From Dimorphilus gyrociliatus (Eukaryota > Animalia > Annelida): a DNA stretch of 64,000 bases. The stretch covers positions 3,873,689-3,937,688 of the forward strand of contig CAJFCJ010000005.1 in the NCBI GenBank assembly GCA_904063045.1, read 5' to 3'. Positions 38,213-45,270 of this stretch are shown here, piece after piece; the first letter of the stretch is position 1; each line of letters opens with the position of its first letter. Both the position numbers and the translations under genes were made by a program. The notes below the pieces were generated by a model that saw only the letters and a list, made by a program, of their open reading frames with translations, was not told the DNA's origin and did no database searches.

Positions 38213-39536
38213 AAAGAATCAAAGAAAAAGAAGAACAAAAAGGGAATAAGACATTAACTAATATTAGAATTTGTCTCTTCTTTTGTTTTTTTTATCATTA
38301 AGTATAATCAGTTTGTTTGTTTTTCTTGTTTTCTAATTACCATATTGGTTTTCATTCTCCAGATGAAACATGCAGACAAATAGGTTATAAAACTTGTTGA
38401 TAGTTAAAGAGCTTTTTGCAGAGAGGTAGTGAAAAACTAAGAGAAAGAATGGAATCAGGGAGGAGAGGGAAGAGAGAGAGAAAGAGAGAGTAGGTAAAAG
38501 TTGATGAGTGGATAGAAAAAGATGAAATTTAAAAAATAAAACATTATTACGTAATAAGGAAATTATATGCTTTGTTAGCTGTTACCAGATTATGCACGTA
38601 AGACTTTTAAAAAAACAACCAAAAACTGTATACCTTTATAACTAACTATATTTACATATGGAACAAGCAATACATAGATATATACTGTATATATTTCAAT
38701 GTATAACAATTATACACCAATATAGAATGTATCTTGCATTCATATATATAAATATACGGTTTTCATTAAATTATTAAATAAAACCACACAAGAAAAGTGA
38801 ACTAAAGTACTTGGTTGTTGAATGGAATTTCTTAAATATCTATTACAAATAAACATGTAGTTTAACAACTTTCCAGTTTTTATTCATTTCAATATTAAAT
38901 AGAAATCATTGCATAAATGCAAAATTTATTGGTTAAACTTGAATTAAATTTCTCGAATAGGTTCTTTTTTTTATTCAAGCACAGAAAATACTATAGACTG
39001 TCAAAGGCTTTTTAAGATTGTAGAAATAACTTAGCAAGGTCGTCTTCATGTACTCCTATTGAAGTTTGAAGGATTTTTTGGGAAATTAGTCATAAAATGT
39101 GAGCACTATTGATTATATTCAATACTATGTGCTTAATAAATATATATATATATATATAAATTTATACAGTATATATACGACACACTGTCTACAATTGAAA
39201 TTATTCACGCTCTGGCCTAACTCTTCAACTGGTTTCTATTATGAATCTTACGGACCTAATGTAATAATTGAGAAATAATCGATGTCGTCTCTTAGCTATT
39301 ATTTACTTAAAAACTGATTATATTATAATCTCCTTTCTTCTATCTATTTACCTTTCATTCTCCTTTGTCCAGTCAAAAATTTGCTTTATATAAAATTCCA
39401 TTACCCGTTTCCTTTTATTTATGAAAGAATTTTGTCATGATTTCATGGGAAAAACACTTAAAAGTGTCAATATAATTATAATCATTTAAATAAAATTCAT
39501 AAATTATACATTTAATTGATCGAGTCTGTAAGTGTA

Positions 39537-41596
39537 TTATATTTGTTTATAGGCCTCCCACAGATCATTTCCAACCCAAAATTTGTTGTGTTTTAACCCC
39601 AAAGCCGACATAGCTGTTGGAGCTAAATCGCCATTACTTATTGGTAATGTGAATTTTGCGTCTTTTCTTACACCAGGTCCTTTTATTAGTAACGGTATCC
39701 TTTGAACTTCATCTAACATTTGACCGTGACCATAAAATATACCTGAATGGTCTGATGTAAGAATGACTAGAGTTTCTTCTTCCTTTTCCTCCTCATCGAT
39801 TGTATCTAATATTTTTCCAATTATTCTGTCAATGTTATCAATGGCCTTTAAATATTCCTCGCCGCACCAACCACTTGTGTGCCCTGTCACGTCTATACTA
39901 TCAAAATAGAAAAATGTCAAAGATTTTTCAGTTGAGTCAAAAACGTTTTTCAAGTAAGCTGTTCCATTTCCCACAACCCATTCGTCAAGCGCATAAACGC
40001 TTGCACCACTCATTCTCATTTCTTTGTCTAGAGTTCCGGGTGCGCCATAACTGGCGTGAAACCTAAGAAAAGGCCATGAGTAAAAAAAAGCTGTTCTTAT
40101 TGTGACGTCAGAACTTTTAGCCTGCGAAAACATAGTTGGTAGGTGGAAATTTTTCCCTGAAGTCGGTGATATATTTTCTGTATAGCCTCTATATGGAGGC
40201 TTCCACCCATTATCATGTATACCAGAGGCATCGGAATCCATGGAACATAATATATTTGTCCAAGAAGGACCAGATACTGTATGTAAAACTGTTCTTGCTT
40301 GATTATTTGCCGAAGTGCCAAGTTTTTCCATTCTAAGCAGATTTGGGACACCTCCGCTAGCTTCTTTATAGCAGTCGTAATGTAATCCGTCAACTCCAAT
40401 TATAACGACATGTTTTGCTTCTTCAACGGTCTTGCTACTATCGGAGCATTTGGGAATATCACAAAATTCAATTAAGATGTTCGAATCTTTCTGAACAAGG
40501 CAAAATGGTCCTTCCGACATACCGGCAGGGTTTCGGCAATAGTTTGATGCTTCTTCGAGACTAGAATCCGGAAATCGATTAATATCTCTATAGATTGGAT
40601 TTTGAACTGAGTCCCATCTTAAACAACTACCACCCGAAGAACTGATCGATATATTCCCCATATAATCTCTTCCATTATCCGAGGTTTTGCAAGAATTTTC
40701 GCACCTATCTAATTCACAATAATCCCATTCTAGTTCCTCTGATAAAACGTAACACCAAGGTCGGTCCTTGGAATCAGCAGGATTACGGCAATAATTGGAA
40801 GCGTCGGATAAAGTTGCGTCAGGGAAATAAGATGAATTATAAAAAGAGTGTGAATGAGGGGCCTGCTTATCCCATCTTTGGCATCTATAGCCAGATTCGG
40901 TTAGACTGGTTGTTCCAACATACGTTTCACCGTCACCATTATAGCAAGTGGATTCTAATGCAATCAATTAAAAAGAGAAAACTATCAATAAAGTACTGAC
41001 AATCTATAAACATTATGAAGGATATACTATATACATAAATATTACTTTTACAGAATGGAACATCGCAGTATTCCCAAGATGTATCGTCGACGAAGCACCA
41101 GGGACCAAATGGCTTTCTATCAGGATTTCGGCAATATTCCCCATTTCGACATTCCTTACCAGTTCTCGTCCTTCGGAGTGAACCTTTGTATCCTAAAGCC
41201 ACCTCGTCAAATTTGCATTCAGCAAAATCGTGACATTTTTCAACGTTGCAGAATTCCCATTCGCTTCGATTATTTGGATTAGTATAACACCATAGACCTT
41301 GTGATTTCTCATCAGGATTACGGCAGTTATTACCGATCTCTTCCCAACTATTATCAGGAAAGGCTTTCCATTGGCTTTCATTTAACAATAGTCTCCATTC
41401 GACACATGCCTGACCGGAAGCTGTTACATTCTTAAAACCTCTGTAATCCCTGCCCTCTTCCTCAATTCGACATTCTATTTCCATGAAGGAAGTTATAAAG
41501 AAATAAGGATGTATTTTAAGTGGTACCTGGAATATTTGCGACACAACAGCTAATGATGACCAGGCCTAGCAAAATATTTTGCAGTATTAAGTTCAT
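39537..41596 (-). CDS. Secreted protein: signal peptide + four kringle domains + alkaline-phosphatase-superfamily (nucleotide pyrophosphatase/phosphodiesterase-like) domain (638 aa, 3 exons)
   Basis: Exons 41596-41527 (MNLILQNILLGLVIISCCVANIP), 41474-41046 and 40954-39537 are phase-consistent (1917 nt). Four kringles carry YRG/YKG/YVG/YMG, CRNP and PWC/PFC motifs. The AP-fold motifs are HVVIIGVDG, TVSGPSW, DVTGH, TSDHSG..GHG and IPLLIKGPGV. Confidence 0.9.
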
Positions 41597-44197: not shown

Positions 44198-45270
44198 ATG
44201 GAGTCGTTTCAACGAAGGTAAGATTTTTAATTTCTTTTTTTTTCCGTATAGTTTAATTCTTTCGTTTCATAATTACTTTTCTACTTTTGTCAAAAGAGAA
44301 AAGTAATGAGAGTAAGGCGCGCCAAGTTTTTCAAAGATAAATTTACAGTATATATATATATATATATATATTTCTTTAAGGTTTATATTAAACATAACAC
44401 AGAATTAAATAAAATTGCATACACTACTTTTATATTTACTCTTAATATTAAAAAGAAGAAGAAGAAGTAAAAGAAGATGAAGAAGAGTGTATAATATACT
44501 TATTTCTACTTTTAATAGTTGAAAATAATTGTTCTTCTGTTTTTTTAATAGAAAATTCCAAGGGTTAACGTAATAAAAGCAATGTTGTCTTTATCCAAAA
44601 ATTTATTAGACAGTAGCAGGTGGTAGAAATGTCTGAGAGCGGAAGTTTGCCTAATCCGATTGCAACGTCAACAAGAAACGTTCAAAGATTCTAGTAGTTA
44701 GATCCACTTTGTTTATAATTAATTTCTATTTTTCTAAACAAATGTTAAATATACATTGGGTATATATATACTGTATATATGTATATACAGGTAATTATAG
44801 AGATATTAATAAAGGCGATTATATACTAATTCATTAATTAATTATCCTATTACCTAGTACATAGTTTAATTTTATAACTACTTTTCTTTGTATTTAGTCT
44901 ATTTTTTACCATCTTCTTAATACTTTTGTTAGAATAAGAAATAACAATCTTTCCATTGAATAACGTGATCTAATGAAAAAAATTATTTTCCAGGATGTTA
45001 CTCAATGTAATCCTCTTGATCCTTTTGACAAACTGCGTCACTAAGGGGGAAAAGAGGCAACCTCACCTATCGGTTGACGCCCACTTACAATCAATAGCCG
45101 ATATGCTGGGAAATCCAAGAAAGGTAGAAGAAACTAATGGTATGAAGGCCTGGCTTAACAGATTAGGTAAACGTTGGATCAATACACCCCAGTTAAACCG
45201 TAATGAGGACGGTTTTGAAGGATTTAATGAGCAATTCAAGAAAAGAAAACTTCTACAAGATGTGTATTGA
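44198..45270 (+). CDS. CRH/DH44/egg-laying-hormone family neuropeptide precursor
   Basis: Exon 44198-44217 (MESFQR) splices in frame (AG|gtaaga...ccag|G) to 44994-45270. Signal peptide MLLNVILLILLTNC, a KR site, then a 36-aa peptide QPHLSVDAHLQSIADMLGNPRKVEETNGMKAWLNRL followed by GKR (amidation). The LSxxxxLxxxxDML pattern is typical of ELH/DH44. Confidence 0.85.

Follow-up and report, generated by a model that had tools for sequence, protein, structure and literature searches.

Kringle modules act as extracellular binding units in plasminogen/HGF-type proteases, in ROR/MuSK kinases and in Kremen. Among phosphoesterases, ENPP4, ENPP7/alk-SMase and the Xanthomonas (Xac) NPP, all assigned to PF01663, come closest to the enzyme described here, with which they have in common the fold, the metal ligands, an active-site Asn and a nucleophile placed in the same x-P-x motif. 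In this study, we analyzed a gene of the annelid Dimorphilus gyrociliatus that joins modules of the first kind to a catalytic core of the second. The gene lies in a stretch of 64,000 nucleotides of contig CAJFCJ010000005.1 (assembly GCA_904063045.1), which is referred to as the window. A first-pass annotation, made from the letters alone, had described four kringles fused to a "bacterial-style" enzyme of the alkaline-phosphatase (AP) superfamily and had known of no named kringle-phosphatase family. Consistent with the latter statement, no such family and no paper pairing kringles with an NPP or AP-superfamily enzyme was found in full-text literature searches.

The coding span runs from 39537 to 41596 on the minus strand in three exons, and these are exactly the coordinates that had been assigned to the gene in the first-pass annotation. 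Its features are as follows (X2 is one of the two sequencing runs described below).

41596..41527, minus strand: exon 1, with the ATG and a 23-residue hydrophobic leader, ending in phase 1
41526..41475, minus strand: predicted intron 1, 52 nt, GT..AG, phase 1, unspliced in run X2
41474..41046, minus strand: exon 2, 429 nt, symmetric phase 1-1, encoding kringles 1 and 2
41233..41472, minus strand: kringle 1, 80 aa, Pfam PF00051 over residues 3-80 of the exon-2 product
41050..41217, minus strand: kringle 2, 56 aa, the second Pfam PF00051 stretch in exon 2
41045..40955, minus strand: predicted intron 2, 91 nt, GT..AG, phase 1, unspliced in run X2
40954..39537, minus strand: exon 3, 1418 nt, a single uninterrupted ORF for kringle 3, kringle 4 and the enzyme core
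40701..40946, minus strand: kringle 3, Pfam PF00051 with E = 4.8e-27
40446..40691, minus strand: kringle 4, Pfam PF00051 with E = 1.1e-18
39540..40409, minus strand: minimal NPP-type core of the alkaline-phosphatase superfamily, 290 aa, PF01663
40389-40391, minus strand: Asp codon of GVDG
40272-40274, minus strand: codon of the Ser nucleophile in TVSGPSW
40209-40211, minus strand: Asn codon of HDNGW
39891-39893, minus strand: Asp codon of DVTGH
39879-39881, minus strand: His codon of DVTGH
39747-39752, minus strand: Asp and His codons of SDH
39726-39728, minus strand: His codon of GHG
39537..39539, minus strand: stop codon TAA
39414..39419, minus strand: polyadenylation signal AATAAA of the sense transcript

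Exon 1 translates as MNLILQNILLGLVIISCCVANIP, and by inspection its leader reads as a predicted signal peptide. As kringles 3 and 4 are encoded together with the enzyme in one ORF, the kringle-enzyme fusion is independent of the splice predictions. The earlier observation that the enzyme and two kringles occupy a common 1418-nt exon is therefore borne out, and the possibility raised with it, that kringles and enzyme belong to separate genes, is at odds with this exon. The splicing of the leader and kringles 1 and 2 to exon 3 is predicted from canonical sites, frame continuity and conservation in a paralogue. The position and phase of the intron following exon 1 match those at L002, the locus of the paralogue's orthologue; for intron 2, the acceptor, that is, the exon-3 acceptor site, is also present in L001, a contig carrying the orthologue of the window gene, and both position and phase are kept in L002. 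Searches and folds were run exon by exon, and exons 1, 2 and 3 were never joined for them. The D. gyrociliatus genome is 73.8 Mb in size, has a median intron of 66 bp and shows no trans-splicing (PMC7854359). Contamination can be excluded, since the gene has spliceosomal introns and animal genes as neighbors.

Two other features of the window may be mentioned here. A single-exon serpin gene (PF00079; 5899-7221, minus strand; 440 aa) matches a called gene of GCA_904063045.1 exactly. A 91-aa ORF (44995-45270, plus strand) has a signal-peptide-like start and dibasic sites (GKR and KKRK) and looks like a small neuropeptide or prohormone precursor, as judged by its translation; an exact look-up returned no recorded gene with exactly that product.

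The kringles differ in completeness. Exon 2 matched PF00051 with an E-value of 3.4e-23 in two stretches. Kringles 1, 3 and 4 are full-length matches (profile positions 1-3 to 79 of 79, E 1e-18 to 5e-27). Kringle 2 was detected solely as the second, partial stretch in exon 2; it is a mini-kringle that retains the six Cys, with its Cys2-Cys3 loop down to 5 residues. The count of four kringles thus holds for the number of stretches, three of which are full, but not for kringle 2 as a complete domain (56 residues with the loop deleted). The second kringle of the paralogue is likewise short, with about 70 residues. Read by eye in the lysine-pocket region of the kringles, which is neither a binding nor a structural comparison, the residues following CRNP are DEK, DRK, ADSKD and AGMSE. 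In an AlphaFold model of the whole exon-3 product (pTM 0.67), the kringles had pLDDT values of about 35-60; this low confidence is due to a shallow alignment, and the model is silent on how the kringles and the enzyme dock.

The paralogue, DgyrCDS8898 (P0167, 647 aa), is encoded elsewhere in the same D. gyrociliatus assembly, on a different contig; Pfam recognizes four kringle stretches and PF01663 in it. It is collinear with the window gene, its residues 29-189 corresponding to exon 2 and its residues 200-643 to exon 3. Each paralogue has an approximately 80%-identical orthologue in other assemblies: P0001, encoded on the genomic Logan contig L001, is that of the window gene (80% identical), and P0013, encoded at L002, is that of DgyrCDS8898. 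At L002, a leader exon is followed by a phase-1 intron ahead of the first kringle Cys, as in the window; a short second kringle is then followed by another phase-1 intron, and one exon encodes kringle 3, kringle 4 and the enzyme. A codon comparison between the window gene and L001 gave a dN/dS of 0.07 overall with dS saturated (kringles 0.10, enzyme 0.05), and by this comparison the sense ORF is shown to be under strong purifying selection. The product of the window gene is absent from a collection of 5.8 billion proteins in which DgyrCDS8898 is present. As the window product is missing from both protein searches, with the paralogue present, a gap in the public record is suggested: in the public annotation of D. 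gyrociliatus, the window gene is probably missing or incorrectly modeled. Most of our confidence goes to the reading that the gene is functional and protein-coding, belongs to a pair of old paralogues and encodes a signal peptide, kringle 1, a short kringle 2, kringles 3 and 4 and a minimal NPP-type core, and we consider this likely.

The stretch was found in only two runs, X1 and X2. X1 is a marine metatranscriptome, whose single matching contig (426 nt, about 96% identical) spans the final 107 codons together with some of the 3' UTR; this contig derives from a close relative and is uninformative as to strand. In it, the stop codon at 39537 reads TAT, which would extend that relative's protein at the C-terminus, and the 3' UTR has a 10-nt insertion at 39509. 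For run X2, the library type is not recorded; its contigs total 60 Mb, and the depth is about 400. X2 matches the window perfectly from 39404 to 41556, except at two joints, where the following segments are skipped.

40279..40340, plus strand: skipped segment, 62 nt, GT..AG, absent from some of the X2 contigs (depth 173 without it, 242 with it)
40993..41053, plus strand: skipped segment, 61 nt, GT..AG, skipped throughout X2

The former is spliced in about 42% of the X2 depth; its removal takes out the codons immediately preceding that of the catalytic Ser and would shift the sense reading frame there. The latter spans the 3' boundary of sense exon 2, running into intron 2. Both segments have good plus-strand donors and pyrimidine-rich acceptors; read in the sense direction, they would be CT..AC and protein-truncating. 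With plus-strand GT..AG borders and such donors and acceptors, these segments represent introns of a transcript that runs antisense to the kringle gene, and the X2 contigs point to abundant spliced antisense RNA spanning the entire kringle-enzyme gene. None of the predicted sense splice junctions was seen in the X2 contigs (39404-41556), and both sense introns are retained. Once 40993-41053 is spliced out, two short ORFs on the plus strand are fused into one of 129 aa, whose composition looks random. Two other explanations for the X2 contigs were considered. Genomic DNA with two deletions fits far less well than splicing, given two precise same-strand GT..AG gaps of 61-62 nt with pyrimidine tracts in otherwise identical sequence, and trans-splicing as the cause of the truncated 5' contig end is excluded by the genome paper (PMC7854359).

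The antisense RNA bears on whether the window copy is expressed at all. It could be that this copy is silent or repressed by the abundant spliced antisense RNA, being redundant with DgyrCDS8898, which would do the work. X2 contigs that show only plus-strand GT..AG joints and keep the sense introns favor such a situation, as does a public protein record holding the paralogue's product and not that of the window gene. However, the low dN/dS reflects long-term constraint on the window copy specifically, and its ORF is intact. The X2 contig stops at 39404, 10 nt downstream of the sense-strand AATAAA, and no plus-strand polyA signal was found in the scanned region around the other contig end (41480-41700). 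Furthermore, the antisense acceptor is not conserved in the orthologous contig L001. As contigs drop rare isoforms, the absence of sense mRNA cannot be read from them. Silencing of the window copy therefore appears rather unlikely to us, and we keep to a functional gene as the preferred reading.

Relatives of the enzyme core were sought in an exhaustive search of 1.84 billion cluster representatives, which returned 6281 of them, 30 with E-values up to 1e-30. After the orthologue P0001, the next relatives are kringle-less proteins, 33-42% identical, from Owenia fusiformis, Pomphorhynchus laevis, Neoechinorhynchus agilis and further contigs. Maximum-likelihood tree building joined the window gene to P0001 and P0167 to P0013, both at 100/100 support, and these four together with the Owenia and acanthocephalan proteins form one clade (95/91). 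In an alignment of the family (A2), the Cys residues at DGLxxxC, LC and GWC are invariant or nearly so. The best tree does not group the four kringle fusions exclusively with one another, although a topology that keeps them together was not rejected (AU p 0.051). Sequences that are clearly bacterial, carrying PA14 or PI-PLC fusions, lie on a separate and more distant branch. Thus the catalytic-domain phylogeny with bacterial homologues, which the first-pass annotation had proposed as a check, speaks against its own label of a "bacterial-style" enzyme, as the nearest relatives of the core are animal proteins.

Taken literally, the label would make the enzyme domain a recent bacterial acquisition fused to animal kringles. 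Language-model neighbors are bacterial clusters throughout, a word-based homologue search with the window protein yielded the orthologue and beyond it bacterial proteins only, and the wider core family is mostly bacterial or environmental. However, the word-based search missed the animal relatives that the exhaustive search and the tree place with the core (Owenia and two acanthocephalans), the bacterial PA14 and PI-PLC group branches apart, and the gene has spliceosomal introns and animal genes around it; we regard an acquisition from bacteria as very improbable. The bacterial relatives carry PA14, ricin-B, laminin-G, Ig, chitobiase-C or PI-PLC modules. One of them (P0050, 710 aa) has the core fused to a Ca-dependent PI-PLC domain, and another (P0011, 836 aa) has a duplicated core plus PA14; these fusions give hints of substrates related to phospholipid head groups or glycans, as far as domain neighbors can indicate this. 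A further relative, P0030 (7978 aa, from a 26-kb Logan contig), contains two copies of the small NPP-type core at about residues 1950-2200.

The core itself matched Phosphodiest PF01663 with an E-value of 2.7e-23 and 83.6 bits (gathering cut-off 23), over profile positions 1-220 of 342. The motifs GVDG, TVSGPSW, DVTGH, SDH and GHG are all present and conserved in a 38-sequence family alignment, in which Asp7, Ser46, Asn67, Asp173, His177, Asp220, His221 and His228 (numbered from the first core residue, at 40409) are invariant or nearly so. Compared with solved structures, the profile of this alignment retrieved ENPP4 (E 9e-28) and the Xanthomonas NPP (E 7e-27) ahead of sulfatases (about E 1e-17). 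All six metal ligands (D; D,H; D,H; H) and the active-site Asn align with those of ENPP4 and Xac NPP, in agreement with the earlier statement that the set of ligands is complete and with the motifs named there. The Ser of S-G-P-S-W aligns on the NPP Thr nucleophile (T-F-P-N-H), which confirms the proposed exchange of Thr for Ser; the T-x-P-x-H pattern of NPPs is not found, and at least 90% of the subfamily members keep the Ser. The last His follows the DH pair by 7 residues, versus about 93-105 in ENPP4 and Xac NPP, and the family can for this reason be described as an NPP core without the insert.

Structural comparisons gave a similar picture. An AlphaFold model of the core had a pLDDT of 97.1 and a pTM of 0.94, and an exhaustive structural comparison (VIA-align) ranked NPP7 (Z 31.4), PafA (30.6), Xac NPP (30.5) and ENPP4 (29.8) on top, with sulfatases at about 29. 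Foldseek against the PDB gave superfamily matches only and did not tell NPPs and sulfatases apart. A single-sequence search against PDB sequences yielded weak matches (E about 5e-7) with sulfatases on top, whereas the profile search put NPPs first. NCBIfam returned no equivalog and weak partial matches only, and no characterized close relative was found for the core subfamily. That the core is a non-catalytic binding module, or a sulfatase acting on sulfate esters, would fit the partial Pfam Sulfatase matches on its C-terminal half and the rank of sulfatases near behind NPPs in fold searches, but we give it next to no credence, as all two-metal NPP ligands are present and invariant, the profile search prefers NPPs (E 1e-27) over sulfatases (E 1e-17), the match to the type I sulfatase family PF00884 covers only profile positions 205-300, and S-G-P-S-W ends in Trp where the formylglycine signature (C/S-x-P-x-R) needs Arg.

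The architecture proved to be rare. Two large protein searches contained four kringle-bearing sequences only, all from D. gyrociliatus or close relatives, and no kringle was found in any other relative scanned. For two kringle-less Logan relatives (P0008 and P0012), the upstream DNA contained no kringle in the 247-305 nt available. Neither the genome paper of D. gyrociliatus nor its supplementary material mentions kringles, and the supplement has no entry for DgyrCDS8898, kringle, PF00051 or PF01663 (PMC7854359). The expectation that the combination is not common was therefore correct. The accompanying expectation that it is not already annotated was correct only in part: it has no named family and no paper, but DgyrCDS8898 is present in NCBI/UniRef as an unnamed protein. 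Our verdict, as far as searches of sequence collections can carry it, is that the domain combination is real and restricted to one lineage, so far the dinophilid worms.

Based on the aligned residues, the core would be a two-metal phosphoesterase, probably using Zn2+. The Ser of TVSGPSW would attack the phosphorus, giving a covalent phospho-enzyme intermediate. One metal would be held by the Asp of GVDG and the Asp-His pair of SDH, and the other by the Asp and His of DVTGH and the His of GHG, while the invariant Asn of HDNGW may hydrogen-bond a non-bridging oxygen, as in NPPs. As the core is without the insert of about 95 residues that NPPs have between the DHG and HG motifs, its substrate pocket is predicted to be open. 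The product would most likely be a secreted enzyme whose kringles anchor it to a protein or surface outside the cell, in analogy to the binding modules that bacterial relatives carry in a comparable position on their cores.

The gene probably arose when kringle exons were added by shuffling to a spiralian gene that had none; an origin by exon shuffling is suggested by both introns being in phase 1 and by the symmetric 1-1 exon for kringles 1 and 2. The whole gene would then have been duplicated before D. gyrociliatus split from its relatives. As the paralogues are collinear and share introns, a single fusion, followed by whole-gene duplication before species divergence, is the most economical account. 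Our most complete proposal, which we put forward tentatively, is that dinophilid annelids possess: an exon-shuffled, secreted, kringle-tethered minimal NPP; two diverged copies of it under purifying selection; and, for the window copy, regulation by a fully overlapping spliced antisense RNA, one intron of which removes codons before the catalytic Ser.

If true, this would be the first family pairing kringles with a metallo-phosphoesterase, adding a new catalytic partner to a kringle repertoire hitherto made up of proteases, receptor kinases and Kremen-type receptors. It would also offer a clean and datable case in which exon shuffling was followed by gene duplication, in an annelid with a compact genome. 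The core belongs to an uncharacterized subfamily of animals whose NPP-type cores are the smallest, with 290 residues, Ser as the nucleophile and no insert at the substrate pocket, and such a subfamily could be a useful minimal scaffold for studying the evolution of specificity in the alkaline-phosphatase superfamily. In addition, the public gene set of D. gyrociliatus probably has a gap at this locus.

The known systems nearest to the window gene include its own paralogue. DgyrCDS8898 and its orthologue P0013 are laid out in the same way, with a signal peptide, four kringles of which the second is short, and an NPP-type core, and their introns agree in position and phase with those of the window gene. 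However, the identity between DgyrCDS8898 and the window gene is only 33-36%. In the DgyrCDS8898 lineage, kringle 1 is interrupted by an additional intron and kringle 2 is less strongly shortened; DgyrCDS8898 is annotated, and the window copy apparently is not. The homologues of Owenia fusiformis (CAH1792115 and CAH1797123), Pomphorhynchus laevis (KAI0979309) and Neoechinorhynchus agilis (KAL7667404) are uncharacterized and without kringles; they have an equally small core (33-39% identity) with identical catalytic residues and the conserved Cys. Bacterial COG1524-type small AlkP-superfamily proteins present a matching minimal core, at about 30% identity, that is also joined to a binding module. 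However, their modules are different and usually C-terminal, and they are without the conserved Cys pair of the animal clade.

The NPPs are only about 17-20% identical to the window core. They use Thr where the window core has Ser, and they comprise roughly 380 aa, including the stretch between DHG and the last His that is absent from the 290-aa core; the window protein is also without the SMB or nuclease-like domains of NPPs. As in classical kringle proteins, the kringles of the window gene would serve as extracellular binding units, and they lie between phase-1 introns, consistent with exon shuffling. Their catalytic partner, however, is a predicted metallo-phosphoesterase, whereas that of the classical kringle proteins is a serine protease or a kinase.
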